From the IMG/VR virus record IMGVR_UViG_3300003322_000571, positions 1-64,000 of that record: a stretch of 64,000 nt of DNA. One strand, written 5' to 3'. The translations under genes and the position numbers were made by a program. Under the pieces are notes generated by a model. That model was not told the origin of the DNA. It was given only the letters and a program-made list of their open reading frames with translations, and did no database searches. Shown one piece after another: positions 5,470-43,940 of this stretch; position 1 is the stretch's first letter; each line of letters opens with the position of its first letter.

Positions 5470-5470
5470 T

Positions 5471-9883: not shown

Positions 9884-9889
9884 TAAGAT

Positions 9890-9961: not shown

Positions 9962-9965
9962 CAAA

Positions 9966-10196: not shown

Positions 10197-10203
10197 ATAA
10201 CAT

Positions 10204-10278
10204 ACCGCCTTAGTACAGTGGAAAGTACGAGGTCCTCCTAAGACTTAGACACAGGTTCGATTCCTGTAGGCGGTACCA
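10204..10278 (+). tRNA. tRNA-Arg(CCT)
   Basis: Loop CT-CCT-AA; CCA. Confidence 0.9.
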
Positions 10279-10280
10279 AG

Positions 10281-10310
10281 TTGACACACTAAGGGTAAGC
10301 GATATATACT
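10281..10310 (+). promoter_or_regulatory. sigma70-type promoter
   Basis: TTGACA-N18-TATACT. Confidence 0.65.
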
Positions 10311-10323
10311 TTGCTTATCAGTC

Positions 10324-10397
10324 GCCCCGTTAGCATGAAGGTCGTGCAGTTGCCTTGTAAGCATCAGGTGATGGTTCGATTCCGTCACGGGGCACCA
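10324..10397 (+). tRNA. tRNA-Thr(TGT)
   Basis: Loop CT-TGT-AA; CCA. Confidence 0.9.
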
Positions 10398-22736: not shown

Positions 22737-22951
22737 TGGAACTAAAGGTACGAGCAATTGTCCGTGTTAAGCGAGCAAACGTCGAGTTTGCTCCAGGACT
22801 TGGAATTGGTGTCCTTGCAACACAAGAGTTCAAAGTTCAAGTGCCGTTGGGTCGAACTGTGACCGATCACAGAGTTTCAGCTTGCATTCATGATGTTGGA
22901 CAAGCATTGCTTGACGATAGTGTAGAAGTAATCTACGAGGAAGTGAAATGA
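22736..22951 (+). CDS. hypothetical protein
   Basis: Translationally coupled ORF. Confidence 0.6.
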
Positions 22952-24021
22952 AAATCTACCTTGTCGGCGGTGCAGTTCGCGATATCCTTCTTGGTCTTGA
23001 GCCGAAGGATCGTGACTACGTCGTTGTTGGTGCAACTCCTGAAGATATGCTCGCTAAGGGCTTTTCGAAAGTTGGTGCATCGTTTCCTGTGTTCCTTCAT
23101 CCTGAAACTGGTGAAGAGTACGCTCTTGCACGTACCGAACGGAAGACGGGCGTTGGTTACAACGGGTTTGACGTGACGTTCGATACGTCTATCACTCTGG
23201 AAGATGACCTTCGTCGTCGTGATCTGACGATCAATTCAATGGCAATGGACCTCGAAACGAACGAGATCATTGATCCGTTCGGTGGTCAAAGTGATCTCAA
23301 GCGAAAGATCCTCCGTCATACAAGTGAAGCGTTTGCTGAGGATCCGGTTCGTGTTCTTCGTACTGCTCGGTTCGCAGCTCGGTACGGGTTTGATGTGTCA
23401 GAAACGACACTGGAGCTGATGGAACAGGTCGCTCCAGAACTTGACCATGTTCCTGCGGAACGAATCTTCGCCGAGTTCCAGAAGGGCTTGATGGAGAAAG
23501 CTCCGTACAGGATGCTTGGTGTACTGGTACAGTGCTACGCTGACAACGTTAAGTCGGTTGAACCATTTCTTCGTGGTGATCATGATCTGTGGCAACGTCT
23601 GCACCTTGTTCGAGATGATACGCCGTTGCATGTTCGGTTTGCTCTGATCGCTCGTCGCTTCCACCCGGAAGATTACGAAGCGTGCAAGATTCCTACAGAC
23701 CTTGCACGAGTGGCGAAAGCAGTTCAGTCGCACTTCTATCAATGGAAGGGACTTCGTACTTGCTCTGATGAACGGTTCGTTAAGATGTGTGACAGATACC
23801 GTGCTTTCAGCAACCCGGACTTCTTCCAGCAAGTGCTCGATGTATTTGAATTCATTGAACATCCGTACGCGATCAAAGGTGTATGGCGTGAACCTATCAA
23901 CGAACGTCTGGCGTTGGCAACGAGCATCGATGCTGCAACAATTGTTGCTAGTCTGCCGATTAAAGACGGCAAGTTGATTCAGGCGAAGATTCACGAAGCA
24001 CGTCTTGCCGCAATGAAGTAA
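22948..24021 (+). CDS. cca: tRNA nucleotidyltransferase (CCA-adding enzyme)
   Basis: [40 protein letters not shown]. Confidence 0.95.
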
Positions 24022-29800: not shown

Positions 29801-30358
29801 GGTGACTTGTCTTGGCAGCCAATTTCGTCTGCTGGTACTGTTACTTCGGTACAGGTTGCTGGTGGTACGACTGGTTTGACGTTCTCAGGTGGTCCTATCA
29901 CTACGAGCGGTACGATCACGATGGCTGGTACGCTTGCTATCGCCAACGGCGGTACAGGTCAGACGACAGCTTCTGGTGCAATTAACGCATTGGTTCCGTC
30001 TCAGACTGGTAACGCTGGTTTGTACTTGACAACGAACGGTACTTCTGTCTCTTGGGCTGCTGCATCTGCTACTGCTTCTAATATCCCACGTGTAACAACG
30101 TTCGATATTAACGCTCGTGGTGCTCGTGTTGCATTGACAGCTGACGTCACGGTTAACAGTGGCGTGTTTGCAGTTGGTGATGTTATCAGCTTCTACAACA
30201 CAACAGCTTCTACGCTCCAGTTGATCCAAGGTTCAGGTATGACGGGACGTTTGGATGGTACAGCTAACACAGGTACACGTACAATTCAGCCTTTCGGTGT
30301 GTGCTACATCTGGTTCAACACAACAACGGAATACATCGTTTCCGGTAGCGTTTTGTAA
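26894..30358 (+). CDS. long tail fibre with ~80-aa tandem repeats
   Basis: IKIKRSS...GELAINTYDGK; repeated GTVTSV..SGGTTGLT.SGGPITTSGT...ANGGTG...LPSQTGN. Confidence 0.85.
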   Translation: MSQTIKIKRSSDPGKVPASSELELGELAINTYDGKIFFKRDDGTESIVNVTGETGNTGQPAGSLYNIQMNGGGNSFAAIPNGTDGYILTAHGNATPTWEPAPATGVTSVAVSGGTTGLTTSGGPITGAGTITLGGTLAIANGGTGATTAGAALTALLPSQTGNNGRVLSTDGTTASWIAPPAAGVTSVQASGGTTGMTFSGGPITSSGTLTMAGTLAIANGGTGATTAANAINALVPSQTGNSGRYLTTNGTVVSWSAAAPGTVTSVQGSGGTTGLTFSGGPITTTGTLTLGGTLAVANGGTGSTTQSGAINNLLPAQSGQGGKVLTTDGSAVSWTTASAGTVTSVAIDPSTTGLTFAGGPITSSGTFTVGGTLAVANGGTGATTANSALNALLPSQTGNSGRVLSTNGTDASWIAAATGTVTSVAVSGGTTGLTTSGGPVTTSGTITLAGTLALANGGTGATTQAGAANAVLPSQTGNSGRYLTTNGTNVSWSAAAPGTVTSVQASGGTTGLTFSGGPVTTSGTLTLSGTLALANGGTGATTQAGAANAVLPSQSTFAGQFLTTDGTNVSWAMPSASATSLNGIGTTPRSATTAGVYAGIDGGSDPIVTLSNPAAGVDGGVFQMYVIDNGSLNLGFSNDAYNQTNFLTVTRPAASSTASNITFAATAMQINAPVTATSFSGVGTNLTALNASNVSSGTLAIANGGTGQTTASGAINALVPSQTGNSGRVLGTNGTAVSWVAASAGTVTSVAASGGTTGLTFSGSPITTSGTLTLSGTLALANGGTGATTQAGAANAVLPSQTSAAGQFLTTNGTNVSWATVSATTLGATGISPRAASGSTSGIYAGIDTAPNNDPTFTMVSGDATTGNKVSQLYIVDSGQINWGFCADNFSGQTNFLTVGRSSGTNNASTITLTSTAFQVNAALTATSLAGSGTGITALSASNISTGVIQDPLRLATTGTPSSSTYLRGDLSWQPISSAGTVTSVQVAGGTTGLTFSGGPITTSGTITMAGTLAIANGGTGQTTASGAINALVPSQTGNAGLYLTTNGTSVSWAAASATASNIPRVTTFDINARGARVALTADVTVNSGVFAVGDVISFYNTTASTLQLIQGSGMTGRLDGTANTGTRTIQPFGVCYIWFNTTTEYIVSGSVL

Positions 30359-30367
30359 GGATAACTA

Positions 30368-32458
30368 ATGAGCTTTCTTGCTGGTATGGTTAACGGAACA
30401 ACAGGCCGCTCAGGCCTTGTTGTTCCAACGACCTTTACGTTGAAAACTTCGTCGACTAATAACCAAACGTCGACGAGTAGTATTACTGCCGTTGACAATA
30501 ACTCAGGAACTAACACAGTTCCTGTGACAGTAGTCAACCCAACTCTTGGTTCTGTTTCTTCATTCACACCGTTCTGCAGTCCTCAGGGGTATTGGAGTTA
30601 TTCAGCCAACGCAACAATTGGTGATGGATCAACGATTTATCCTACTAATGCTGCATTGGTGACAAGCACAGGTGACTTTACGTGGGAAGCATATATCACA
30701 CGTAACACGACATCGTCTGCTGTTATGTGCTTGGCTAACACGAGCACAGCTGGACAGGCTATTCTTCGTGTTACAGGTGACACTGCAGCCAACATTCTTG
30801 GTTTGTTCTCGTACACAGGATCTGCTTTTGCAACAGCACTTAAGGGTGGTCAGTGGGCTCACTTTGCTATCGTCCGTGCTTCTAGTACAATCTCTGTTTA
30901 CTTGAACGGTAGGTTGTTGATGCCGCCTGTAACAGGTAACAATACGTCGTTCTCGTTTACAGGATCTGGAGCTTTGATTGGTGGTGCTAACAACAGCGTT
31001 ACAAACCAAGAATGGATTGGTAACATTAGCAACCTCCGTATCACGATCGGTACTGCTGTATACACAGGTCAATTCATTCCATCGAACGCACCACTAACAA
31101 CATTGGCTAACACAAAGCTATTGATGTTCTGCGGTCCATCACACCTTGACTACTCTGGTTCTGGTACGACGTTCACATATTCGACGACTGCGACGTACTC
31201 TGCACGCATCAGCCAAGCTAATCCATTCACAACAACGCAAAGTTTTGTGCCTGCAAGTGATATTGGATCTTTAGCAAACATTAGTCGAGCGGGTGCTGCT
31301 ACGACTATGACTTACATTACGTTGAATTCTGCACCTGCAGCTATCGGAGCTTCTGATTGGACGGCAGAAGGTTGGTTTTACTTTACGTCAAACGTCGCGG
31401 CAGCATCATTTATGAGTTGCTGGATCAACGGAAATAACGGTGCTTCGTCATGGGCTCTTAGTCAAGGTGGAGGCGGTGCCGGTTCAAGTGCGGGCGATCA
31501 GACAAAGCTTCGTATTGTTACGAACGCTGGTGGTGTTAGTGACGTCAACTTCGGTGCACAAGGCACGCTACCTTTAAACAGTTGGGTTCACGTTGCTGTA
31601 TGTCGTTCTGGTGGTACTCTCCGTTTGTACTCTAACGGGGTACAGGTGTTTACCACATCAGGAGGTCCAGGAACTGGAACGTATGCAAACAACCCAACAT
31701 TGACGCTGTTTAACTACAGTAACGCTGGAAGTAACCAATGTAACGGCTATGCGTATAACGTCCGCTATATGATTGGTACAGCTGCTTATACAGGTACAAC
31801 ATACACGATCCCGACGGGGCCACTGGCTGCTACAGGATCAACTGCTATGTTCAACTTCCGCAACCCGGGATTGTATGACGGCACAGGAAATGCGGGAATT
31901 ATTACAGCTGGTGATACTACCCGTTTGACTACAGCTACAGCTGCTTACGGAACGACTTCTGTTAGTTTGCCTAACGCTGGTGACTATCTGTTGCTGACAA
32001 ATCCCCGTGCAGCTTTCCAATTTGGCAACGGTGACTTCACTGTTGAAGGTTGGATTAACTGGACGAATGCTGATTCAACATTGTTCTACATTATCGACGG
32101 TCGCAACCCTTCACAGACGTCGGGTTGGAACTTGTCGCGTAGTGCAGCCAACAAACTGGTATGGTCAAACGGTACTGGTACAGCAGGAGCAATCCTAACG
32201 TCCACAGCAAACCTTGATGTCATGAACACATGGACTCACGTTGCGTACTGCCGTACAGCTGGTGTCGGTCGTTTGTTCATTAACGGTGTTCTCGATTCGT
32301 CGGTTACTGATACGACGGTATATGACATCTCTTCGTACTACGCATACATCGGTGCTGGATCGAACGCTGTGTCTCAAATGAACGGTAACGTTCAAGGTTT
32401 CCGCGTATCAAAGTTTGGTAGGTACACAGCAAACTTCACGCCACCAACAAACATCTAA
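30368..32458 (+). CDS. LamG/concanavalin-like triple-domain adhesin
   Basis: Three D(F/W)TxE(G/A) ... WxH(V/F)A..R ... NG repeats. Confidence 0.85.
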   Translation: MSFLAGMVNGTTGRSGLVVPTTFTLKTSSTNNQTSTSSITAVDNNSGTNTVPVTVVNPTLGSVSSFTPFCSPQGYWSYSANATIGDGSTIYPTNAALVTSTGDFTWEAYITRNTTSSAVMCLANTSTAGQAILRVTGDTAANILGLFSYTGSAFATALKGGQWAHFAIVRASSTISVYLNGRLLMPPVTGNNTSFSFTGSGALIGGANNSVTNQEWIGNISNLRITIGTAVYTGQFIPSNAPLTTLANTKLLMFCGPSHLDYSGSGTTFTYSTTATYSARISQANPFTTTQSFVPASDIGSLANISRAGAATTMTYITLNSAPAAIGASDWTAEGWFYFTSNVAAASFMSCWINGNNGASSWALSQGGGGAGSSAGDQTKLRIVTNAGGVSDVNFGAQGTLPLNSWVHVAVCRSGGTLRLYSNGVQVFTTSGGPGTGTYANNPTLTLFNYSNAGSNQCNGYAYNVRYMIGTAAYTGTTYTIPTGPLAATGSTAMFNFRNPGLYDGTGNAGIITAGDTTRLTTATAAYGTTSVSLPNAGDYLLLTNPRAAFQFGNGDFTVEGWINWTNADSTLFYIIDGRNPSQTSGWNLSRSAANKLVWSNGTGTAGAILTSTANLDVMNTWTHVAYCRTAGVGRLFINGVLDSSVTDTTVYDISSYYAYIGAGSNAVSQMNGNVQGFRVSKFGRYTANFTPPTNI

Positions 32459-32461
32459 CAC

Positions 32462-32485
32462 AGGACCCTTCGGGGTCCTTTTTTA
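32462..32485 (+). terminator. intrinsic terminator
   Basis: AGGACCC-TTCG-GGGTCCTTTTTT. Confidence 0.85.
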
Positions 32486-32616
32486 TACCCTGTTGACTTG
32501 GTCTAAATATTGAGAGAAAGTTTACTTCATCGATTGATTGCTTAGGTAGCTTTTGCTGCACTAAGCATAAATAAAAGGACACGCCACTCTTGGCACAATT
32601 TTTGGAAGCAAACGAA

Positions 32617-32758
32617 ATGTTCAACCACAATGTGATTACCGTCAAGGCAGCCACAAATGCGATTAAAAATTCGCAGGGGGTTCTTCGTAGCTAAAGAAAA
32701 TGCGCAAGCACAGCTAACACAAGAGCCCTGGCAGATGAAAATCACCAGGGCTTTTTTG
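32617..32758 (+). promoter_or_regulatory. putative leader-peptide attenuator upstream of tRNA array 2
   Basis: 25-aa ORF 32617-32694; terminator AAGAGCCCTGG...CCAGGGCTTTTTT; GGGGTTCTT in the ORF can pair with the terminator 5' arm. Confidence 0.65.
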
Positions 32759-32854
32759 TTAACTGTTGTTCTGAGAGTACCGCGAGACCATGCATGAAAA
32801 CTGCTGGCCGGCCTTAGTAGCAACAATCGTTCTTTCACAATTTAGATGTACTTT

Positions 32855-32927
32855 CTTCCGTTGGTGTAATTGGCAGCACACCAGACTTTTAATCTGGCAG
32901 GTCCGGGATCGTTGCCCGGGCGGAGGA
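32855..32927 (+). tRNA. tRNA-Lys(TTT)
   Basis: CCAGA-CTTTTAA-TCTGG. Confidence 0.85.
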
Positions 32928-32944
32928 CAATATGTGTACAAAGC

Positions 32945-33027
32945 TCCACAGTAAGCATAATTGGTACTGCAACGCACTGTTAATGCGTCTTCCTTGAGTC
33001 TTGCTGGTTCGAGTCCAGCCTGTGGAG
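32945..33027 (+). tRNA. tRNA-Asn(GTT) with an enlarged variable loop, nested in an inverted repeat
   Basis: ACGCA-CTGTTAA-TGCGT. Confidence 0.85.
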
Positions 33028-33041
33028 CTTTGTACACATAT

Positions 33042-33119
33042 TCCGGGAGAGGCGCCGTGGTGGCAACCGCTTGACTGTTAATCAAGATTAGACTGGTTCG
33101 ACTCCAGTTCCCGGAGCCA
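33042..33119 (+). tRNA. tRNA-Asn(GTT)
   Basis: CTTGA-CTGTTAA-TCAAG; GCCA end. Confidence 0.9.
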
Positions 33120-33129
33120 AAATAAGGAG

Positions 33130-33516
33130 ATGCATATGAAGCACGTTGCAATTATCGTTGGGGGTTACCATGATTTCGATTATAATGACTACAATTCTGT
33201 TACTAAGCTGATCGCTTCTTCGATCACTGAATGGACAGAAGTGTCCGATGAACAGTTCGAACTGTTGAAGCGTGCTCAATCATATGATTATCACAATCGT
33301 TTTACCTTGATTGAACGTCCTGTTGACGAACCAGCATATGTTCGTAAGACAGTTGACGATTATGTCAAGTGGGCTAAGGCTGAAGAAGACAAGAAAGCTA
33401 AAGAAAAGCAAAAGGCCGCTGAGGCAGCCCTAGCTAAGAAGCTCAAGCGTGAAGCGAAGACGCTTGCTGATAAGCGAAAGCTACTCGACAAGCTAAAGGA
33501 AGAGCTTGGCGAATAA
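33130..33516 (+). CDS. hypothetical protein with a Lys-rich coiled coil
   Basis: AAGGAG RBS. Confidence 0.7.
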   Translation: MHMKHVAIIVGGYHDFDYNDYNSVTKLIASSITEWTEVSDEQFELLKRAQSYDYHNRFTLIERPVDEPAYVRKTVDDYVKWAKAEEDKKAKEKQKAAEAALAKKLKREAKTLADKRKLLDKLKEELGE

Positions 33517-33520
33517 ACAA

Positions 33521-33599
33521 GGGTTCTGTGTTGATGCTGGTTGACTGCTTGCCTTCGGGGGCAGTCAACGCCCGGGTACAAGTCCTGGAGAATCCACCA
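33521..33599 (+). ncRNA. tmRNA tRNA-like-domain mimic (G3:U70, A73, UUCG-capped stem)
   Basis: GGGTTCT/AGAATCC-ACCA; no D-stem; long GTTGACTGC/GCAGTCAAC helix; T-arm CCGGG-TACAAGT-CCTGG. Confidence 0.7.
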
Positions 33600-33603
33600 A
33601 ATT

Positions 33604-33675
33604 GGGACGTTGGCAGAATGGTTATGCACCGGACTCTTAATCCGACTTATCCGAGTTCGATCCTCGGGCGTCCTA
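33604..33675 (+). tRNA. tRNA-Lys(CTT)
   Basis: CGGA-CTCTTAA-TCCG. Confidence 0.9.
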
Positions 33676-33699
33676 CAGTTTAAGGTAATATTGTTTTAT

Positions 33700-33774
33700 G
33701 GGAGTATGGCGTAGCTGGAAACGTACTAGGCTCTTACCCTTGTGTCCACGGTTCGAATCCGTGTGCTCCCACCA
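33700..33774 (+). tRNA. tRNA-Lys(CTT), variant
   Basis: AGG-CTCTTAC-CCT; CCA. Confidence 0.85.
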
Positions 33775-33790
33775 ACTTTGAAAGGATTAG

Positions 33791-34024
33791 ATGACTCTAC
33801 CTTCAACATATCAGATCGGTGACGTAGTACTATACCTTCCGTACGAGATGCGTGAGGATGATCACGTGATTCATATTCGCGCTACGATCGTTGCTGTAAC
33901 GTTTACAAAAGCGAAAGTGTTCTATGACATTGTATTTGAGTTGGAAGGTACAGAGTATCTGAAGCAACGAGTAGATTCAGCTTTTGTGCTGAATGACAGC
34001 ACAAATGTTCGTGTGGTTCATTAA
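33791..34024 (+). CDS. hypothetical protein
   Basis: AAGGA RBS. Confidence 0.65.
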   Translation: MTLPSTYQIGDVVLYLPYEMREDDHVIHIRATIVAVTFTKAKVFYDIVFELEGTEYLKQRVDSAFVLNDSTNVRVVH

Positions 34025-34127
34025 CCTAATCGGTTGACGATAAGTTGTGTGCTGAACTGAATAAATGCGTTGTTGTAAGGTACACGATCGACTACTATCA
34101 ACGGTAGTATACTCTAGAGATTAAATT

Positions 34128-34200
34128 GCCCAGCGGTGTGGCTGGTGAAACTACCTCTCTTACAAAGAGGATTTGCGGGGTTCGAAACCCTGGCTGGGCA
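34128..34200 (+). tRNA. tRNA-Val(TAC), divergent D-arm
   Basis: CCTCT-CTTACAA-AGAGG. Confidence 0.8.
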
Positions 34201-34256
34201 CAGTAACCTAATACGTTGTGAAACAATTAGGTTAACATTAAAATACTTCAAACAAT

Positions 34257-34330
34257 TCCCGGTTAGTTCAATGGCAGAACATCGTGCTGATAACGCGGAG
34301 ACACAGGATCGTAACCTGTACTGGGAACCA
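34257..34330 (+). tRNA. tRNA-Ile(GAT)
   Basis: Loop CT-GAT-AA; CCA. Confidence 0.85.
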
Positions 34331-34343
34331 ATAGGAGACTGAT

Positions 34344-34820
34344 ATGCCTTGGCCTGATGCAATGGATGGCGACATGGACGATTACTATTATGGTCCTATT
34401 GGGCCTGCTGGTCGAATCGGAGGTGGCGCAGATCAACAGTATGCGGAACGATATTCGCATGACAATTCTGCACGTTCATCGCCTTTGTATCAGTTCAATA
34501 GCTTAGAAGAGCTTGTCACTTCTGAAGTGTTCCAGCAACAGCTAGGAATGGCGCTTGAATGCAAGAACAAGCAAATTGCTGAGCTTCGCCAAGAATTGAT
34601 CGACAAACACCCAGGACATCCTAGTACTGAAGCGGTGTTTGATCAGTGGGAATGGATTCAGCAAAACCAGTCGAAGTCGTTCTGGTCGTTTGGATACAAC
34701 ATGATTCGTAAGAATTATTGTTATAGTGGGTTTGGTACGTACGGATTTGGATTTCCATCGTATTACCACGCATATGCTGCAGCAAACAGGTACGAAGCAC
34801 CTGAAAGTGCTGCAGATTGA
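34344..34820 (+). CDS. hypothetical protein
   Basis: AGGAG RBS. Confidence 0.65.
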   Translation: MPWPDAMDGDMDDYYYGPIGPAGRIGGGADQQYAERYSHDNSARSSPLYQFNSLEELVTSEVFQQQLGMALECKNKQIAELRQELIDKHPGHPSTEAVFDQWEWIQQNQSKSFWSFGYNMIRKNYCYSGFGTYGFGFPSYYHAYAAANRYEAPESAAD

Positions 34821-34826
34821 TAGTCT

Positions 34827-34901
34827 GGTGGGGTAGCTCAGAGGCAGAGCAATCGGTCGATAACCGATAGGTCGAGATTTCGAAATTCTCTCTCACCACC
34901 A
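34827..34901 (+). tRNA. tRNA-Ile(GAT), with an unusual C33
   Basis: ATCGG-TCGATAA-CCGAT; CCA. Confidence 0.85.
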
Positions 34902-34911
34902 AATAGTCACT

Positions 34912-34986
34912 GCTCCGTAAACATTGACGGTGATGCCTGGTTTTGTAGTCCAGTTGAAGGCGGTTCGAATCCGTCACGGAGCACCA
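34912..34986 (+). tRNA. tRNA-Thr(TGT)
   Basis: GCTCCGT/ACGGAGC; loop TT-TGT-AG. Confidence 0.8.
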
Positions 34987-34988
34987 AT

Positions 34989-35067
34989 CCTCGTGTTAAG
35001 CGCCCTTGTGCACAGGGTAGCCAATAGGTATGGACAATGTTACTTTCGACGGTAACCACGGGGGCCA
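34989..35067 (+). ncRNA. D-arm-less tRNA-like RNA
   Basis: CCTCGTG/CACGGGG-GCCA; three internal hairpins including a TTCGA loop. Confidence 0.5.
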
Positions 35068-35085
35068 AATAACAAGGGAGCAACC

Positions 35086-35283
35086 ATGATCACATTTAGC
35101 GAACTGCGTAAATCGTACAAGTATTTCAAGAACGAGCTTCAGACGAACGACAAGGCAAAGATTTTCAATGCGATGGTGACAGATTTCACCGCCAGTGATC
35201 AAATCAACCCGTTCGACTATGCTGAAGTTGGTCACTTCTATGTGCGTGTTTCGCTGTACCGCCTGATCGCCTGGTTGTACTAA
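35086..35283 (+). CDS. hypothetical protein
   Basis: GGAG RBS. Confidence 0.6.
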   Translation: MITFSELRKSYKYFKNELQTNDKAKIFNAMVTDFTASDQINPFDYAEVGHFYVRVSLYRLIAWLY

Positions 35284-35290
35284 CAAGAAT

Positions 35291-35369
35291 TTGCGGCTGC
35301 GTAGCAACACGGTTACTTCTTTGACTCTTAATCAAAACCATAACACCGTTAGCGATTTTATCTCCGCAA
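35291..35369 (+). ncRNA. Y RNA-like RNA 5: minimal, displaying a tRNA-Lys(CTT) anticodon arm
   Basis: GCGGCTGCGTAG...GGTTACTTC-[TTTGA-CTCTTAA-TCAAA]...TTTATCTCCGC. Confidence 0.72.
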
Positions 35370-35388
35370 CTTAATTTCTGGACTGACA

Positions 35389-35856
35389 ATGAATCAGTAT
35401 GTCACTGGCGTTCTTGATAACGACGCTAAAGGAACCACAGGTGTCGGCACTATCTTCTTCGTCGATGTAACACTCGACGGAATTAAGACAAGGCATACGT
35501 GGGGACTGGTTGAACAAATTCAAGGGAAGTTCGATCTAGACGCTGTCGTCGCTCCTGTTCGCGAACGTTTGAAAGCAGCTGCTTCTGCACAGAAGGCAGC
35601 TGAAGAACAAGCGAAGAAGGAAAAGATGGAGCAGCGTGAAGCAAGCGTTGTAGTTGATGACGTACTGGCTTCACTTGTCAAGACAGTACTGAACGATTCG
35701 GGAAGCGCAAAAGCGATTTCTGAGTACAAGTCGGGCAAGGAAAAAGCACTGAATGCACTCGTCGGATCTGTGATCAAGCAGATCAGGACCCAGAAGTTGA
35801 ATGTCAGCTTCGATGCATTCACAATCAACAGAGCTCTGCAAGCACAACTTGCATGA
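35389..35856 (+). CDS. protein with a C-terminal GatB/YqeY tail domain
   Basis: EYKSGKEKALNALVGSVIK. Confidence 0.65.
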   Translation: MNQYVTGVLDNDAKGTTGVGTIFFVDVTLDGIKTRHTWGLVEQIQGKFDLDAVVAPVRERLKAAASAQKAAEEQAKKEKMEQREASVVVDDVLASLVKTVLNDSGSAKAISEYKSGKEKALNALVGSVIKQIRTQKLNVSFDAFTINRALQAQLA

Positions 35857-35862
35857 GTCAAT

Positions 35863-35935
35863 TCCGGTGTAGCTCAGAGGTAGTAGCAACTGACTGTTAA
35901 TCAGTGGGTCGGAGGTTCGATCCCTTCCACCGGAG
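35863..35935 (+). tRNA. tRNA-Asn(GTT)
   Basis: ACTGA-CTGTTAA-TCAGT. Confidence 0.92.
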
Positions 35936-35953
35936 CAAATTTAGGAGTGTCAG

Positions 35954-36145
35954 ATGTTCGCATTGACCAAAGAACAGAGTGAAAAGCTGAACGAATGGGC
36001 CAAGGCCCTGAAGAACGGGCCTACAGGTGCTATCGGTGGTCGCTTCACATACAGTTTCACGCCAACGAGTCTTGGTACAATCGTCAAAGTCAAATGTGGC
36101 TTGACGAATGAAGAAGTTGATCTGACGGATTATCAGGACTGGTAA
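35954..36145 (+). CDS. conserved-type phage hypothetical protein
   Basis: GAIGGRFTYSFTPTSLG. Confidence 0.7.
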   Translation: MFALTKEQSEKLNEWAKALKNGPTGAIGGRFTYSFTPTSLGTIVKVKCGLTNEEVDLTDYQDW

Positions 36146-36146
36146 T

Positions 36147-36644
36147 ATGCTAGACTATCTGTACGACGTTGAAGACCGCATTCACGAACTGTTATCGCAT
36201 CCCGAACTATGGAATGATCTTCTCGTTACTTACGAGAAGCCGACCGTAGAACGTCTGTGGATGCAAGACGGCGAGAACCGAATTTACCTGCACAGGATTC
36301 ACACGTGCAATCCAGGTGAAGCGTACTATCACAAGCATCCGTGGCCTTCCGCAATGCGTGTTGTTTCAGGAACGTACGAGATGCAAGTTGGGCTAATGAT
36401 GCCTGGCAATACGGAGCCAACAACGGCTGCAAAGCTTCGTTTGGATCATGGATCTACATACGAGATGACCAACTCTGAAGCAATGCATTCTGTGCGACCT
36501 CTTGCATACGAAACTTTGTCGCTGATGGTAACTGGTCCTCGCTGGACTATTAGTGATTCAGCCGCAAAGCTTGATAACGGTCGACTGACACAGGATCAAC
36601 GAGATAGGTTGTTTGCAGATTTTCTGGACTACTATCTTTGGTAA
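36147..36644 (+). CDS. cupin-like protein
   Basis: HKHPW, GTYE, HSV. Confidence 0.6.
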   Translation: MLDYLYDVEDRIHELLSHPELWNDLLVTYEKPTVERLWMQDGENRIYLHRIHTCNPGEAYYHKHPWPSAMRVVSGTYEMQVGLMMPGNTEPTTAAKLRLDHGSTYEMTNSEAMHSVRPLAYETLSLMVTGPRWTISDSAAKLDNGRLTQDQRDRLFADFLDYYLW

Positions 36645-36649
36645 AAATT

Positions 36650-36718
36650 GGGCTGCCCGCTGGGGCGGAGGGATCCCTTGCAAGGATCTCGGGACGGGTT
36701 CGATCCCCGTGCGGTCCA
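36650..36718 (+). tRNA. tRNA-Ala(TGC), short D-arm
   Basis: G3:U70; GATCC-CTTGCAA-GGATC. Confidence 0.8.
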
Positions 36719-36723
36719 CATAT

Positions 36724-36783
36724 GAGCTTGATGTTGATGCAACCTGCATGCGGAGAGCGGTACGAGTCCGCATAGGTTCACCA
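36724..36783 (+). ncRNA. mini tRNA-like RNA (G3:U70, ACCA end) related to 33521-33599
   Basis: GAGCTTG/TAGGTTC-ACCA; shared TGTTGATGC and TAC(A/G)AGT T-loop. Confidence 0.55.
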
Positions 36784-36804
36784 CAAACATAGACAGGAAT
36801 TAGA

Positions 36805-37086
36805 ATGTACACAGAAATTGTTGTAGATCATACGCACTATTTCGTCGCTACAAAAGTGATGGAAGGACGAGTATTTGATGTATCAACGCACGCAGGACTA
36901 CACAACCTGTTGGCGATGAGTGATTTTGTAGTTCGAAACCAACAGTTCATCAAATGTCGCCATGATTTGGCGTTTATTGTAAGGACATTCTGTGAAAACC
37001 AACAATCAGAAAGTGCCAAGCGCGCAGACGAAATCTTCGAAGTCGCCAAGTACGGACCAGGATTCTTCGACCTCCATCGATATTGA
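36805..37086 (+). CDS. hypothetical protein
   Basis: ORF with RBS. Confidence 0.5.
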   Translation: MYTEIVVDHTHYFVATKVMEGRVFDVSTHAGLHNLLAMSDFVVRNQQFIKCRHDLAFIVRTFCENQQSESAKRADEIFEVAKYGPGFFDLHRY

Positions 37087-37360
37087 ATCGTCTCCCGATG
37101 AGAAGTTCAAGAAGCAGTGGAAAGAGACGGCAGCGCGTCTTGCTGACTTGCAGAAGTTGATTTACGACTTCTATGAGCTTCACGATACGGACGTAATTGA
37201 CGGCAGCAAGAAAAAGAAGATTCCGCCGAGGAGAGACCTTCAATTGCAACGTCAACTGTACCGTCAAGAAGCTACCAGGTTGCATAACTTGAGGGTCAAG
37301 CTGATCATGTCAGCTTACGATGAAAATCGTCGTCTCCGTACAGAACTGTTTGAGGATTAA
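36992..37360 (+). CDS. hypothetical protein
   Basis: ORF; start uncertain. Confidence 0.5.
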   Translation: MKTNNQKVPSAQTKSSKSPSTDQDSSTSIDIESSPDEKFKKQWKETAARLADLQKLIYDFYELHDTDVIDGSKKKKIPPRRDLQLQRQLYRQEATRLHNLRVKLIMSAYDENRRLRTELFED

Positions 37361-37362
37361 TT

Positions 37363-37608
37363 ATGTACGATGCGCTCGAGCGATACATGCGAGCTTGCGA
37401 GGTAGTATTCAACATCATCTCAGCGCCGTTCAAGTTGAGTAAGGATGGCACGCTGGTGTATTACTTCCTGTTTACGTTTGTCGGCGTGCCGTCACTAGCA
37501 GTATCTTTGGTACTTGCTGTATTTGGTTGGTTGACTTGGTGGACAACAGTTGGTGTTATTGTTGTTAACTTGGCTGTAGTTTGGTATTGGTTCATTTACA
37601 AGAAGTGA
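37363..37608 (+). CDS. membrane protein
   Basis: Two transmembrane segments; GAGG RBS. Confidence 0.65.
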   Translation: MYDALERYMRACEVVFNIISAPFKLSKDGTLVYYFLFTFVGVPSLAVSLVLAVFGWLTWWTTVGVIVVNLAVVWYWFIYKK

Positions 37609-37613
37609 ACGCT

Positions 37614-37684
37614 GGGATGCAAACTTTAAGGTGAAGTACCTGGCTTTTAACCAGGAAAACAGGGGTCAGTACCCTGGCGTCCTA
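37614..37684 (+). tRNA. tRNA-Lys(TTT), atypical T-loop
   Basis: CCTGG-CTTTTAA-CCAGG. Confidence 0.8.
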
Positions 37685-37701
37685 CTAACGGGAAGACAGA
37701 C

Positions 37702-38118
37702 ATGACTGAAGACGAAGTAACAGTGATGAAGCAGATCTGGTCGTTGATGATCCATGAAGGTCGTCCGACAGATCCTAATGCTGACTGGTCAATCTACTGC
37801 GGTGATTTTAATGATTACTGGCAGCTTACCAGCACAGGCTGGGATGGATTGAAGAAGCAAAAGGATGCGTTCATCGAACAAATCAAAGAGGTAGGTGTTA
37901 ACATCTACCGCTGCGACGTTCCTGAGTACAATTGTTATGGTCACTTCTGTGATTCCAACTCACCATGCGATCAAGTCCATGTGTGGACAGGGAACATGCT
38001 GTTGAATGATGGGACAAAGATTTTTGTGTCCGCAAAGGATATTGATCTTCGTCCGCTTGTTAATCGATTGACAAGCAAACAAGACCAAGTAGACTTGGTC
38101 AAACTATATTTTGGTTGA
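37702..38118 (+). CDS. hypothetical protein
   Basis: ORF. Confidence 0.65.
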   Translation: MTEDEVTVMKQIWSLMIHEGRPTDPNADWSIYCGDFNDYWQLTSTGWDGLKKQKDAFIEQIKEVGVNIYRCDVPEYNCYGHFCDSNSPCDQVHVWTGNMLLNDGTKIFVSAKDIDLRPLVNRLTSKQDQVDLVKLYFG

Positions 38119-38222
38119 TTTAGCACATACAAGGAGGATGCTATGACACCGCTAAACGCATCGAGCGAACCAATGGAGTTCCGCGTAACAGTGTAAACGG
38201 AATATCGAACAAGTTCAAGAGG

Positions 38223-38513
38223 ATGGCCGAGATCTACAGGATCTTTGCTAAAGACTGGGAACACGTACTCGACTTTTCCGATGACGCTTTATTGCAGTTG
38301 TATAACCACGAATCGTACGGTGGGCGTATTGATTCGAACAATGGTTATGCGCACGGCAAAAAGTATCTTAATTTGCACGTTACGATGTGGAAAGAAGATA
38401 TCGCAAAGGGCTTGCTTTTCAAGCATGAGCTATACGAAGACAACGTCTTCCCTCACTGGTGGCTAGACAACATCTTGAAAGATGTGTACAACAACTATGC
38501 TACCTGGAAATAA
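38223..38513 (+). CDS. hypothetical protein
   Basis: ORF. Confidence 0.65.
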   Translation: MAEIYRIFAKDWEHVLDFSDDALLQLYNHESYGGRIDSNNGYAHGKKYLNLHVTMWKEDIAKGLLFKHELYEDNVFPHWWLDNILKDVYNNYATWK

Positions 38514-38530
38514 TCACAAGAACACATCCT

Positions 38531-38872
38531 ATGAACACGCATTCTGTCCCTCAAGACGTCCTACAAAAATTCTTCACGAACACAGACGACACAGGTCGCT
38601 TTGTGTATACGTCGAAGCGAACAGGCCGCACATACTTTGTCGAGCCTATTGAAACCGCTCACACACCTAAATGGGGTTCTGTTGATCCTGCGACAGGCAA
38701 CCTCATGCATAAGAAGGGCGACGGTAAGTACCGTGGTGGTATCTCTCCTAGCGAATCGTTGATCACGCCGGAGAATGGTTTCAAGAATATTCAGGTGCTA
38801 GACCGCGGTACAAGTCCTTTGCTTGCAATCGACTATATCGATTCAAAGTACCCTGATAAAGTTGACACTTAA
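38531..38872 (+). CDS. conserved-type hypothetical protein
   Basis: TGRF..S.RTGRTYFVEPI, WGSVDPATG, ESLITPENGF. Confidence 0.75.
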   Translation: MNTHSVPQDVLQKFFTNTDDTGRFVYTSKRTGRTYFVEPIETAHTPKWGSVDPATGNLMHKKGDGKYRGGISPSESLITPENGFKNIQVLDRGTSPLLAIDYIDSKYPDKVDT

Positions 38873-39005
38873 ACGGGTTAACTTGACACTGAGCGCGATT
38901 GAGTCTCCTCGCTCATAAAACATACGAAGAGATCCGCGTAGCGCGATCCAGCGCCATCCTGTAAAGGGCAAGTACTGGAAGGTCAGGCAGCGGCTGACCA
39001 ATCAT

Positions 39006-39079
39006 GGGGGCGGAGTGTTTACGGGATAGCACGTTACTCTTGCACGGTTTCAGATCGAGTTCAAGCCTCGACGCCTCCA
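39006..39079 (+). tRNA. tRNA-Ala(TGC), divergent
   Basis: GGGGGCG/CGCCTCC with G3:U70; loop CT-TGC-AC. Confidence 0.75.
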
Positions 39080-39102
39080 CAAACTTCTAGACGAGAATAG
39101 AC

Positions 39103-39543
39103 ATGAAAGTCCGCAAGATCGCTAAGGCGAAACTCTTCACTTATGCACAACGCCAAGCGTTTTACACCGCGCGTTGGTTCAGTCTGCGATTCAGTGCATG
39201 GGGGAGCGACGTACGTCGTGCAGCTCGCCATTTGAAGGTCGGTACAATCATTGAGACGTGTGGCCTTGACGTTGCTGAAATCGTTAACGTTGATTGGCAA
39301 GATGACAGTATCAAATACAAGTCACTGACACGTCCTGACCAAGGGTTTGGATACTGCAGTATTCGTAATTGTGGACCTCTGCCTCTTCGTCCTTACGCTG
39401 TTGAGCGCCGTCTTGACCTGTTTAACAAGTACGGAAAAGACGGTCTGTCTCTGCGTTATTACGTCGAAGATTGCCGGATGCCAATCGAAGAAGCTAAGAA
39501 GCAGCTTGACGCTTTTAAGGCGGAGTGGAATGCGAAAGAATGA
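39103..39543 (+). CDS. hypothetical protein
   Basis: ORF. Confidence 0.65.
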   Translation: MKVRKIAKAKLFTYAQRQAFYTARWFSLRFSAWGSDVRRAARHLKVGTIIETCGLDVAEIVNVDWQDDSIKYKSLTRPDQGFGYCSIRNCGPLPLRPYAVERRLDLFNKYGKDGLSLRYYVEDCRMPIEEAKKQLDAFKAEWNAKE

Positions 39544-39892
39544 TCTGATCAAGATGCTACAGGACCTACCTGGTAATCCTGAAGTTGTGTTCTGGAACGG
39601 ATTTGTCAATGACTACCATCATATTGATCGTAACGTTGAGACGGTGACACTGGTCAAAGAAACACGAGAGTTTGTTCGTCATTGCTTGACGCTTGCTTCG
39701 GGTGGGGTTCCTCCTACGGAGCAAACGTTGGATGCTGCAATGAAACGTCGTGAATGGGAACGTCCGAACGAATTTGTTGATCCTAATGAACATCAACAGT
39801 GGTACGGCACGAAGAAGAAAAAGTTGTACGTGCTACAAGGATTGCCGCGCGGTAAGACTATGTGGGATCGTATGGGTGACATGGAATACTAA
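39530..39892 (+). CDS. hypothetical protein
   Basis: GGAG RBS; MRKNDLIKMLQDLPGNPEV. Confidence 0.7.
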   Translation: MRKNDLIKMLQDLPGNPEVVFWNGFVNDYHHIDRNVETVTLVKETREFVRHCLTLASGGVPPTEQTLDAAMKRREWERPNEFVDPNEHQQWYGTKKKKLYVLQGLPRGKTMWDRMGDMEY

Positions 39893-40075
39893 ATGGCAAC
39901 AACCACAAATCAAAAGGCGATGGCACTGCTTGATTTATGTGAGAAGTTCGTTAACGACCAAAGGATTTCTTGCCCCGAAGCTGTTTACCAAACAGATAGG
40001 GTCATTGAAAATGCATATGACTTCATTACAGAAGTGTGTGAAATCGTAGGCTATTACGAATACCCGGAGGAATGA
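39893..40075 (+). CDS. hypothetical protein
   Basis: Coupled ORF. Confidence 0.65.
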   Translation: MATTTNQKAMALLDLCEKFVNDQRISCPEAVYQTDRVIENAYDFITEVCEIVGYYEYPEE

Positions 40076-40269
40076 TGGGAACTTTGATTTGGTTGGTGTT
40101 CACGACCGTCGTTGGCGGTCTGATCGGCAAGTATGTCCCTGCTGAATCGCAAGCGTTCATCGGTGCTGTGATCGGCTTTGTTGTCGGTCTGGTTCTTCGA
40201 CTGATTGTTGCGGGCGGTGGCGAAGGTCTCGATGATCTTGCTGACGGTATCGGCGACATGATCGACTGA
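40072..40269 (+). CDS. small membrane protein
   Basis: Two transmembrane segments. Confidence 0.65.
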   Translation: MMGTLIWLVFTTVVGGLIGKYVPAESQAFIGAVIGFVVGLVLRLIVAGGGEGLDDLADGIGDMID

Positions 40270-40276
40270 TGGTATT

Positions 40277-40349
40277 GGGGGATTAGCTCAGCTGGGAGAG
40301 CGACGGATTTGCAATTCGTAGGTCAGGAGTTCGATCCTCCTATCCTCCA
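40277..40349 (+). tRNA. tRNA-Ala(TGC)
   Basis: Canonical; G3:U70. Confidence 0.93.
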
Positions 40350-40541
40350 CAAAGAAAGTAACGTATGGTACTGACATTTACATTGGCGTGGTGGATGATT
40401 CCACTAGCGGTTGCAGTAATCGGAACGTTGTTCATGCCAACAGGTTCAGGTGGCTTTGTAGTAGGGCTACTGTGCTGGTTTGCAGCGATTTGTATCGTAT
40501 TAGGTCGTTATGTCGGCCTGTGGTTCGGTTGAACATTTTAT

Positions 40542-40612
40542 ACCTCGTTAGCTCAAAGGTAGAGCGCTGCATTGACATTGCAGATACGGCGGATCGTTAC
40601 CGTCACGAGGTA
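40542..40612 (+). tRNA. tRNA-Val(GAC)
   Basis: CTGCA-TTGACAT-TGCAG. Confidence 0.88.
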
Positions 40613-40633
40613 CAAAGATACGTTATAACGTTT

Positions 40634-40704
40634 GCTCTCATAGTACAGTGGCAGTACACGACCTTGGTACGGTTGAGACATGGGTTCAATTCCCGTTGAG
40701 AGCA
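40634..40704 (+). tRNA. tRNA-Thr(GGT)
   Basis: Loop TT-GGT-AC. Confidence 0.88.
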
Positions 40705-40708
40705 CAAA

Positions 40709-40906
40709 ATGATTGTTTGTATTTGTCATTTTGTCCGTTCCCAAGACATTGAAAAATGTATTGAAGACGGATGTGATTTGGAAGGCATCCAAAAGCGAAC
40801 ACGTGCATGTACATCATGTATGCGCTGCAGAGATGTCATTGAAGACTTGTTACAGAAGGGAACTAGTGATGCTAGGCTATCCAGTGAGGATGACGGGACG
40901 AGATAG
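40709..40906 (+). CDS. Bfd-like (2Fe-2S) protein
   Basis: MIVCIC...CTSC. Confidence 0.75.
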   Translation: MIVCICHFVRSQDIEKCIEDGCDLEGIQKRTRACTSCMRCRDVIEDLLQKGTSDARLSSEDDGTR

Positions 40907-41138
40907 TTGGTCCGGTCCTGAAGATAACGGTTACTACGTGTTCAACAGCGATGCTGCACGTAAGGCGTATATCAACGACCAGATGAAGGATCGACGTGGT
41001 GCTGCTCCGGAATACTACGTTGAGTACACTTCCGAACAACCGTTCGAGCTGTTGCCTGAAAGCGTCAACAAGTTCGACGAAGATGGCAAGTTCTTTGCTG
41101 AAAAGATCAGCAAGACTGTCAAAATCAACTTGGTGTGA
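40869..41138 (+). CDS. hypothetical protein
   Basis: ORF. Confidence 0.6.
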   Translation: MLGYPVRMTGRDSWSGPEDNGYYVFNSDAARKAYINDQMKDRRGAAPEYYVEYTSEQPFELLPESVNKFDEDGKFFAEKISKTVKINLV

Positions 41139-41350
41139 ACATGAAACTGGTTGAAGTCACCGGAACTATCCCTGCAGGCTCGTATCCAGCTGTATGCAGC
41201 GGATACGTGTCTGAGTTCAAAGTGAACGGTCAAACATACCGTGCGAAATTCAAGATTGGAGTTCGCGGTATCAACATTCAAGACACCGTGACGGTTACCC
41301 CTGAAGGGATTACGTCGCAGCATCTTGGCGCCAACGGTATTATCGTTTAA
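41135..41350 (+). CDS. hypothetical protein
   Basis: Coupled ORF. Confidence 0.6.
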   Translation: MNMKLVEVTGTIPAGSYPAVCSGYVSEFKVNGQTYRAKFKIGVRGINIQDTVTVTPEGITSQHLGANGIIV

Positions 41351-41763
41351 TGTCGTACGCAAAAAAGACGATCACTTGTATCTATTGCGGTTGTACCAAA
41401 GATCAAAGCCGGCATTCTGCCAAAGGTAAGTACTGTTCCAATAAATGTCAACAGGACTTCCAATATCAACAATACGTCACTCAATGGAAATCAGGCGAGG
41501 TGACTGGTCTCGTTGGTAAGACAGGTATTAGTTACCATGTTCGCAGATATGTGTTTGCGAAATATAACAACAAGTGCTGTATTTGTGGCTGGCGTGAACA
41601 GCATCCCACAGATGGTTCAATCCCTCTAGAAATTGATCATATTGATGGCGATTGGACTAACACCATTGAGAGTAATCTTCGGTTGCTATGTCCCAACTGT
41701 CATAGTTTGACCCCTACATATAAAAGTAGGAATCGTGGTAAGAGTTCACGAACGTATAAATAA
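41350..41763 (+). CDS. HNH endonuclease
   Basis: YCSNKC, LEIDHIDG, NLRLLCPNCH. Confidence 0.9.
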   Translation: MSYAKKTITCIYCGCTKDQSRHSAKGKYCSNKCQQDFQYQQYVTQWKSGEVTGLVGKTGISYHVRRYVFAKYNNKCCICGWREQHPTDGSIPLEIDHIDGDWTNTIESNLRLLCPNCHSLTPTYKSRNRGKSSRTYK

Positions 41764-41770
41764 CTCCATT

Positions 41771-41841
41771 GCCCTTGTAGTATATTGGTATTACAATTGC
41801 CTTGTAAGCATTAGAAGACGGTTCGATTCCGTACTGGGGCA
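41771..41841 (+). tRNA. tRNA-Thr(TGT)
   Basis: Loop CT-TGT-AA. Confidence 0.85.
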
Positions 41842-42041
41842 CAGTCCGAATGTGGTAGCACGGCCGTAAAGGTATAGTCGACCAGCATTTCCGCAGTCGT
41901 AAGCGGATTCATCGAAGCTAGAAAGGCGTACTAGCGCTCGAAAGAGAGATGAGGAAAAAGAAGGCCTTGCAGGTTCTTACCTGGACAAGGGGACTGACCG
42001 TAGGTCAGAAGCCGGTTCTTCTGCCGTCCTTCGATGTTTTT

Positions 42042-42112
42042 GCTCTGTTAGTATAGTGGTATTATGCGACACTCGTAACGTTGAGACTGCAGTTCGATTC
42101 TGCAACGGAGCA
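42042..42112 (+). tRNA. tRNA-Thr(CGT)
   Basis: Loop CT-CGT-AA. Confidence 0.85.
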
Positions 42113-42304
42113 CAAAGCAAGTAGCATTAAGGTCGGTTGTTACAGTTCAGCCCGAATAGATGCGCATCAAGTGACAAACAAGCAACTGTATGCTGTCGCA
42201 TGAGCTTGCCTCCCCTTAAACAAGTACATCTAAATTGGTCTTTTGACCCGTTTTCTTTAATTGCGAACCCTCCTATAGTTGCTGAAACTTAGGAGGGTTT
42301 CCCT

Positions 42305-42706
42305 ATGCAATACAGGATCACCGTGACGGCTGTTCCGTCCGATCTTGCACGCGGTAACAATAAGCCGTACATTGACTGGATTCGTCAGCTGACCGGTGAT
42401 GCACTTGCTGATGGCCATCGCAAGTTCTGTGCGATCCGTGATGGCATGCCGTTGTCATACGTGACGTGGTATCGTCCGACCAAGCCTGCTCCTCTTGGAT
42501 TGTCAGTCGAAGTTGAGGAAATCCTGACGGAGCAGGAACTGAAAGACCGTGAAGCTGCGCAGCTCCGTGAGTTCATGGTCGAAAAGTTCCAAAACCTGCT
42601 CAAAGAGGGCGCTGAGGGATTCAGCGGCTCCGCTGTCGAAGCATGCCGCATGCTGATCAAAGATCCGACACTGATCGGTCACAAGTACATCGCAGCGGGT
42701 GGTTGA
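42305..42706 (+). CDS. hypothetical protein
   Basis: AGGAGG RBS. Confidence 0.65.
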   Translation: MQYRITVTAVPSDLARGNNKPYIDWIRQLTGDALADGHRKFCAIRDGMPLSYVTWYRPTKPAPLGLSVEVEEILTEQELKDREAAQLREFMVEKFQNLLKEGAEGFSGSAVEACRMLIKDPTLIGHKYIAAGG

Positions 42707-43205
42707 TATGGATCGATATACACCATTCGTCATTGCTGGCGTTCTTGCGTTTGGATCGGTCGCTGTACTACGCACCTGTTCCCCGAGTTACCGTGAGGTG
42801 GTTGACAAGCCTGCGGTTTCGATCACCGTCAATCACACGAAGGCTCCGTACCAATGGAAAGTGATCCGTGTGCTCGACGGTGATACCGTTGAAGTCGATG
42901 CAAAGTTCTTCCCCGAAGAGCTCGGCAACATCCGCGTGCGGATTGAAGGAATCGATACACCCGAATCAGGTGGCCGAGCAAAATGTGACGACGAACGTGA
43001 CCGTGCGAAAGTCGCAAAGAAGTTCGCCAAGGACACTCTGGAAGGCAAAGTGATCGAAGTCCGTCAAGTGAAGACAGACAAGTACGGTGGTCGTATCGTC
43101 GGTGACATCTACATCGATGGCAAACCCTATCGCCAGCTGTTGCTTGAAAAGGGACTTGCGAAGTCGTATGATGGTGGTACAAAATCATCATGGTGTCGCC
43201 TATGA
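42699..43205 (+). CDS. thermonuclease (SNase) family protein
   Basis: RVLDGDT, RIEGIDTPE, DKYGGR, GLAKSY. Confidence 0.9.
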   Translation: MVDMDRYTPFVIAGVLAFGSVAVLRTCSPSYREVVDKPAVSITVNHTKAPYQWKVIRVLDGDTVEVDAKFFPEELGNIRVRIEGIDTPESGGRAKCDDERDRAKVAKKFAKDTLEGKVIEVRQVKTDKYGGRIVGDIYIDGKPYRQLLLEKGLAKSYDGGTKSSWCRL

Positions 43206-43362
43206 AAAAGCTATTCACTTACGTCCCTCAGAAACTAAGCAAATTCTTCGGTCAAGACCGGTACACACTGTTTGCGTTGTACGGGTTCTGGTGGACATTC
43301 TTGTCTGAAATTGTCCTCTTGATTTTGATCTCCGGCTTGGCGCTGTTCTACTGGCTGTTCGA

Positions 43363-43563
43363 ATGAAAGTCAATGTAGGCCATAAGCCATACTCTGCAGG
43401 GATGCGTCTGATGCTGTCTCATGCAGTACGGCAGCATTTTCAGGACTGGACTTCTGTTGTTGTCGTGCATCATTACACTGATAATAGCGATAAACTTCAA
43501 CTTGAAGTAGAGCGCCGTCATCAAGACGGGACAATCACATTTGAACGGTTGATTTTCAAATGA
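43363..43563 (+). CDS. hypothetical protein
   Basis: Coupled ORF. Confidence 0.5.
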   Translation: MKVNVGHKPYSAGMRLMLSHAVRQHFQDWTSVVVVHHYTDNSDKLQLEVERRHQDGTITFERLIFK

Positions 43564-43940
43564 AAACGCGAATCACGAAACAACATGAGCTGATGTCCGA
43601 AGAACGTTTCGACGACATCAAGAACAAGCTTCGCCATCTGTTGATTGACGGCGTGATCCTGTATTTCGACGACAGCACGCAAGTGCGTTGGCTCGACGCC
43701 GGCCAAACGTACGAAGCAGGCGACTACATTTACAAGGCGATGGAAAGTGGTGTGTTCATCCTGTGGCCTGGAAATGATGAACACCACTGGATGTATCACG
43801 GTTCGTTCAAGATGTACGAATCTGCTCTGTTCGACGGAATCCTCGAGAGCGCCGAAAAGGCATATGAACTCGAAGGATGGTTCACTGGCGTTCTTGCCAG
43901 TAAGGTGCTGACTGACATGCGCCGCGAAAGGAAAATCTAA
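43560..43940 (+). CDS. hypothetical protein
   Basis: Coupled ORF. Confidence 0.65.
   Translation: MKTRITKQHELMSEERFDDIKNKLRHLLIDGVILYFDDSTQVRWLDAGQTYEAGDYIYKAMESGVFILWPGNDEHHWMYHGSFKMYESALFDGILESAEKAYELEGWFTGVLASKVLTDMRRERKI

Follow-up and report, generated by a model that had tools for sequence, protein, structure and literature searches.

A putative leader-peptide attenuator in front of phage tRNA gene arrays, with the same layout in three other phage genomes

A leader ORF of 25 codons and an intrinsic terminator were found in front of 18 tRNA genes in a jumbo phage, and a run of 14 consecutive residues in the leader is drawn only from the six amino acids that those tRNAs carry. The same layout was found seven more times in three other phage genomes. 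We consider it likely, on sequence evidence without expression data, that this is a ribosome-mediated transcription attenuator which couples transcription of the tRNA array to the supply of the cognate charged tRNAs, and we found no prior description of such a switch.

The analysed stretch (the window) is the first 64 kb of the 350,089-bp IMG/VR contig IMGVR_UViG_3300003322_000571. It is a jumbo phage, encoding a CCA-adding enzyme (22948-24021), structural proteins and 31 tRNA genes, and it begins inside a further tRNA (1-48). Most of its tRNA genes lack an encoded CCA. Judged from the CCA enzyme, its nearest cultured relatives, RsoM2USA, XacN1 and Vibrio 2.275.O, are only distant. The contig has no terminal repeat that would reveal what lies upstream of array 1. 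Besides the 18-tRNA array, the window has another array (426-10397) which carries Pro, Ser, Met, Gly, Val, Leu, Arg and Thr, so the phage sorts its tRNAs by amino acid. tRNA-like fragments, or a tRNA with a long insertion, which ARAGORN does not call lie in two long intergenic regions (about 1584-1715 and about 62358-62392).

The leader ORF runs on the plus strand from ATG at 32617 to TAA at 32692-32694, with a weak Shine-Dalgarno-like GGAAG (32604-32608) 8 nt before the ATG; the phage's genes use GGAG/GGA-type sites at similar spacing. The terminator (32721-32757) consists of AAGAGCCCTGG (32721-31), a 13-nt loop containing an inner 3-bp stem capped by GAAA, CCAGGGC (32745-51) and six T (32752-57). 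It folds at -24.4 kcal/mol with z = -6.8, and a consensus scan missed it only because its loop exceeds 8 nt. The gap from stop codon to terminator is 26 nt, not 25 as in the sequence-only reading, which otherwise described these elements correctly. GGGGTTCTT (32677-85, codons 21-23, region 2) pairs with AAGAGCCCT (32721-29) over 9 bp, two of them G-U. That helix, with a small nested hairpin, is in the minimum-energy fold whenever the transcript ends before the 3' arm of the terminator. Region 3, the terminator's 5' arm (32721-32731), can pair either with region 2 or with region 4, the 3' arm plus the T6 tract (32745-32757). Taken alone the alternative pairing is only modestly better than chance, with -16.2 kcal/mol against -11.5 +/- 2.2 for shuffles, and 3.2% of shuffles are as good.

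ARAGORN called 17 tRNAs from 32855 to 42113 on the plus strand, all Lys, Asn, Val, Ile, Thr or Ala, and Rfam added an 18th at 37615-37683 with anticodon UUU (Lys). They were counted as Lys x5, Asn x3, Val x2, Ile x2, Thr x4 and Ala x3, all within six amino acids, and are interspersed with small ORFs. Among these are one Pfam-confirmed GatB/YqeY-domain ORF (35389-35856) and an HNH endonuclease inside the array (41350-41763); a second GatB/YqeY look-alike, without Pfam confirmation, lies at 2063-2506 among the tRNAs. Genes with the same anticodon (3 Ala-TGC, 3 Asn-GTT, 2 Lys-CTT, 2 Ile-GAT, 2 Thr-TGT) are only 57-66% identical to each other. They are old, diversified copies, which rules out the array composition as a by-product of recent tandem duplication.

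The sequence-only reading had based the match on 16 of 25 residues belonging to the set. This count is weak, because the six amino acids make up 40.3% of the proteome of the window, which gives p = 0.014, and 4% of 25-residue windows in real proteins do as well. The arrangement of the residues is much stronger evidence. Residues 5-18 (32629-32670) are 14 consecutive set residues, and 15 of the 16 residues from 3 to 18 are in the set, with all six amino acids represented. This is the longest such run in the six-frame translation of the 64 kb, the next being 12, 10 and 10. None of 20,000 mononucleotide or Markov shuffles of the intergenic region reached 14 (the maximum was 12), and P = 2.3e-5 for a genuine 24-residue peptide with proteome frequencies. 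The seven-residue tail, which encodes region 2, has only one set residue.

The upstream structural gene (30368-32458) ends with its own perfect terminator at 32462-32485 (+), which isolates the leader unit from upstream transcription. The phage has a TAAATA motif resembling the T4 late promoter, and 17 of its 26 plus-strand copies lie 2-50 nt upstream of a gene or tRNA start, against 2.4 expected for random positions. A comparable late motif is reported for Rak2-like jumbo phages (PMC5259590). Strong terminators in this phage are typically followed by this motif and then the next gene. Two copies precede the leader, CTAAATA at 32503-32509 and CATAAATA at 32566-32573, the second being 43 nt before the ATG and the inferred promoter of the leader and array transcript. 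None lies between the terminator of the leader and the first tRNA, and only one lies inside the array, at 41756. So the only recognisable promoters for 16 of the 18 tRNAs are upstream of the terminator, although this is an argument from a motif and not from a mapped transcription start. No sigma-70 promoters in excess of chance were found. The motif also lies only 4-9 nt upstream of six tRNA genes (2913, 4078, 5644, 10193, 41756, 46922), suggesting transcripts that start almost at the mature 5' end of the tRNA. A second strong terminator with the same GCCCTGG stem (62600-62641) directly abuts the ribosome-binding site of gene 62653-63057 with no TAAATA motif between them, and this could be another gene controlled by read-through.

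The spacer after the terminator (32758-32837) is poorly conserved and has no TAAATA motif and no sigma-70-type match. It is followed by a conserved box (32838-32853) directly before the first tRNA, which is the left copy of a 16-nt perfect inverted repeat (CAATTTAGATGTACTT) that brackets the whole array. The right copy (42222-42237, minus strand) lies 109 nt after the last tRNA, next to a 24-codon minus-strand ORF (42127-42202) with a strong ribosome-binding site. The repeat could serve long-range RNA pairing for processing, or be a protein binding site, a promoter or a recombination site. A promoter in the 96-nt stretch between terminator and array cannot be excluded in this window.

The 128-aa ORF just downstream has a 71%-identical homologue on a 2-kb Logan contig (L009), which begins 7 nt before a homologous leader. 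The start, the 25-codon length and the stop position are the same. The peptide differs at seven positions, the run is now 15 residues, and the changes H4T, N5T and A12T stay inside the set; the differences in codons 3-5 are most simply explained as a -1/+1 pair of indels that restores the reading frame. The terminator is kept, with different bases in its distal helix (GAU:AUC against UCA:UGA) under the same GAAA loop, and the alternative pairing still forms in the truncated transcript. Because MAFFT and RNAalifold misaligned the distal stem, this compensatory change rests on the separate folds. The same kinds of tRNA follow (Lys, Asn, Lys, Ile, Ile, Thr), and the left copy of the inverted repeat is partly conserved. 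An unusual 84-nt tRNA-Asn(GTT)-like gene with a long extra arm, inside a 23-bp perfect hairpin (32929-33042), is a clean insertion in the window relative to L009, which goes straight from tRNA-Lys to the next tRNA-Asn; it may be a mobile element or a unit processed by RNase III.

Identity to L009 is 87% in the leader ORF and 72-74% from stop through terminator, but only 57%, with indels, in the spacer, and 75% in the neighbouring protein gene, whose third codon positions are 59% identical. No other ORF on either strand is conserved: minus-strand ORFs of 72 and 98 aa are absent in L009, and the overlapping +1-frame ORF at 32657-32797 changes length. Synonymous sites in the leader are more conserved than in the neighbour (17/18 identical codons against 62/90, p = 0.019). 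This fits RNA structures overlapping the ORF, but conservation cannot by itself prove translation.

L009 was the only close relative found. Blastn of the region and of the array against 50,697 phage records gave nothing or only isolated tRNAs. Scans of IMG/VR and metagenomes with the flanking proteins, with an alignment of the neighbouring ORF, and with conserved leader and tRNA DNA patterns found only the source contig, and a GTDB genome scan and tblastn of the peptide against phages found nothing. The best homologues of the upstream 696-aa protein, whole or C-terminal piece, are 39% identical or less and not syntenic. A 55% homologue of the neighbouring ORF on another contig (L010) sits in a different context without a leader.

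To model the switch, a 29-nt ribosome footprint was blocked and the transcript was folded up to the point where the 3' arm emerges. With the A site at codons 3-16, the terminator's 5' arm stays sequestered by region 2, and from codon 18 onward region 2 is unavailable. The effect is clearest in L009, where the paired probability falls from 0.86 to about 0.4. The boundary coincides with the end of the regulatory run in both sequences. No convincing 1:2 pause or anti-antiterminator hairpin was found by folding, which showed only weak pairing between the start region and region 2 and a 5-bp hairpin at 32658-75, without covariation data. Naked RNA is therefore predicted to read through, unlike the trp attenuator.

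The decisive evidence is the recurrence of the layout in two unrelated jumbo phages. A weak tRNA match led to LR745206.1, an AT-rich, 634,780-bp uncultured phage (coordinates labelled L014 and L016), whose tRNAs are also partitioned. Array A (Asn, Arg, Leu, Val, Ile, Thr, Met) is preceded by a 38-codon ORF at L014:19797-19913, whose first 21 residues all belong to that set. A run of that set is the longest in 40 kb of six-frame translation; it counts 24 residues because it extends 3 in-frame codons upstream of the ATG, and the next longest is 14. Array B (Pro, Asp x4, Gln x4) is preceded by an ORF (L014:38800-38895) containing PQPQDQDP, the only run of 5 or more for that set in the locus. Array C (His, Phe, Trp, Lys x4, Arg, Ser) is preceded by an ORF (L016:22381-22476) containing HK-FSKSHKWFS. 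Each ORF is followed by a strong terminator ending only 15-18 nt before the first tRNA, which leaves no room for a promoter, so the array can only be reached by reading through it. The three leaders share a conserved upstream box (GGTAGA..AAACTTyTATCTATATTTGTA) and a proximal TAATATATAAGAA element (L014:19667-19796, L014:38670-38799, L016:22251-22380). The fourth array (Met, Glu, Tyr, Ile, Gly) has only the proximal element (L016:44741-44870) and no leader or terminator, and appears to be unregulated.

The cultured Tunturiibacter phage Tunturi_5 (PP885688.1, labelled L017), which is GC-rich and has an Acidobacteriota host, shows the layout three times. A Leu/Cys/Tyr/Ser array is preceded by an ORF (L017:11682-11780) with a 15-residue L/C/S/Y run (p about 7e-10), and its terminator ends about 1 nt before the tRNA, which leaves no room for a promoter. 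This first leader ORF is flanked on both sides by the repeat GTCTTAGTA. A Gln/Gly/Thr/Pro/His/Ala/Phe array has a leader (19748-19861) with 23 of 36 residues in its set. A nine-amino-acid array has a leader (32099-32248), annotated in GenBank as the hypothetical protein gp308, with 37 of 48 residues in its set.

Within each of these two genomes, every leader matches its own array far better than the other arrays, for example 29/37 against 2, 4 and 10, which controls for genome composition. Random 450-nt windows from the same loci reach the observed score essentially only when they contain the leader. In all seven independent leaders the best complement to the terminator's 5' arm lies in the 3' part of the ORF, and in six of seven it lies just after the run; individual p values are 0.002-0.059 and Fisher's combined p is 1.1e-6. 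The amino-acid partition differs between phages, so leaders and arrays must co-evolve. Phages with mixed, unpartitioned arrays (Vibrio TDDLMA, Pseudomonas FBPa36) gave no signal, as expected because the test has no power there.

Based on these results, the attenuation proposed by the sequence-only reading is supported, and we suggest the following mechanism. Transcription would start at the late-type TAAATA promoter, with the start inferred near 32580, run through the leader ORF, and meet the strong terminator 97 nt before the first tRNA. If the six charged tRNAs are plentiful, the ribosome moves quickly onto codons 18-25, which contain region 2 (GGGGUUCUU), and keeps it unpaired, so that the terminator hairpin forms and RNA polymerase stops before the array. 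If any of the six is scarce, the ribosome stalls inside the run, region 2 stays free to pair with AAGAGCCCU (32721-29), the hairpin cannot form, and polymerase reads into the array. Translation of the ORF and the dependence of read-through on stalling are inferred. In two leaders, that of array A in LR745206.1 and the first of Tunturi_5, the stop codon lies 9-10 codons beyond region 2, so a ribosome parked at the stop would not cover it and the timing must differ from the textbook model. Because the product is the sensed molecule, the result would be negative feedback that holds the supply of exactly these tRNAs at demand. It would also switch the array on if host tRNAs are degraded or cleaved during infection, as the sequence-only reading had proposed, but this trigger is an inference. 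PARIS and PrrC cleave tRNA-Lys and phage tRNAs can compensate (PMC11464382, PMC10264068), and tRNA cleavage stalls ribosomes at the cognate codons (PMC13096801).

It is possible, though unlikely, that leader translation does sense the cognate tRNAs but that the output is Rho-dependent polarity, RNase processing or stability of the precursor, the hairpin serving mainly as a processing or stability element. The distant stop codon in some leaders, the fact that no pause hairpin was found and the long stems suited to RNase III elsewhere in the array speak for it. However, all eight hairpins are followed by U tracts, as intrinsic terminators are, and the mutually exclusive pairing is significant across leaders. 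Slightly more doubtful is an independent mini-gene or small RNA with its own promoter and terminator, the array being transcribed from an unrecognised promoter in the spacer, for example the box at 32838-53. The usual order of gene, terminator, promoter and gene in this phage, the conserved box, and nucleotide conservation exceeding what a peptide needs are matched with this view, but it does not explain the cognate run, its recurrence with different sets in seven leaders, or the position of region 2 in the 3' part of the ORF, and in LR745206.1 and Tunturi_5 array 1 there is no room for a promoter after the terminator. A chance ORF next to a terminator is very unlikely, for although the 16/25 count (chosen post hoc) and the pairing are weak alone, the run statistic, the conservation in L009 and six further independent cases are against it.

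Functionally the element is closest to the multivalent thrL and ilvL (ilvGMEDA) leaders of enterobacteria, with trp and his as the textbook cases. These appear to have a short leader ORF with a run of regulatory codons and a non-regulatory tail, an intrinsic terminator before the first regulated gene, and an antiterminator strand placed where a fast ribosome masks it, with charged tRNA being sensed (theory in PMC1183508). Here the regulated genes are tRNA genes rather than biosynthetic enzymes, up to nine amino acids would be sensed at once, the element is in a virus, and there is no clear 1:2 hairpin and no sequence homology. T-box riboswitches also choose between terminator and antiterminator according to tRNA status and control translation-related genes, but they bind uncharged tRNA directly, without a ribosome, through Stem I, a specifier codon and the T-box sequence. 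Rfam found no T-box or any other family in 32459-32854 even at E <= 1, and the only matches in 30000-44000 were the tRNAs themselves and two weak antisense chance matches (Plastid-ycf2). In the T4 tRNA gene cluster no leader-peptide control is known, and T4 has one mixed cluster rather than amino-acid-partitioned arrays. Studies of phage tRNAs as replacements for cleaved or depleted host tRNAs, such as T5 tRNA-Lys against PARIS and the hypothesis of anticodon-nuclease evasion (PMC11464382, PMC10264068), concern the tRNAs themselves, and text searches of these two papers turned up no demand-sensing control of their expression. Full-text literature searches, and a search of the Tunturi_5 genome paper for tRNA mentions, found no description of leader-peptide or attenuator control of tRNA genes in phages or bacteria.

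Why phages carry tRNA genes has been debated for decades, between codon supply and escape from tRNA-cleaving defences, while the control of those genes has hardly been addressed. The leaders would be compact codon-specific sensors that could be reused as reporters of tRNA availability, and they give genome annotators a new class of small ORFs to look for. The leader should respond to loss of specific tRNAs, so it bears directly on the idea that phage tRNAs answer host tRNA depletion. It is probable, though not established, that jumbo phages from unrelated lineages split their tRNA genes into amino-acid-specific arrays, each governed by its own attenuator written in the codons that the array decodes. 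This would be an undescribed family of virus-encoded tRNA-supply homeostats, or sensors of host tRNA destruction, that co-evolve with array content. A leader peptide that reads out the very tRNAs it controls would be the first attenuator known to regulate tRNA genes; it would show that phages meter tRNA supply by demand, and would explain why some jumbo phages sort tRNAs into amino-acid-restricted arrays.
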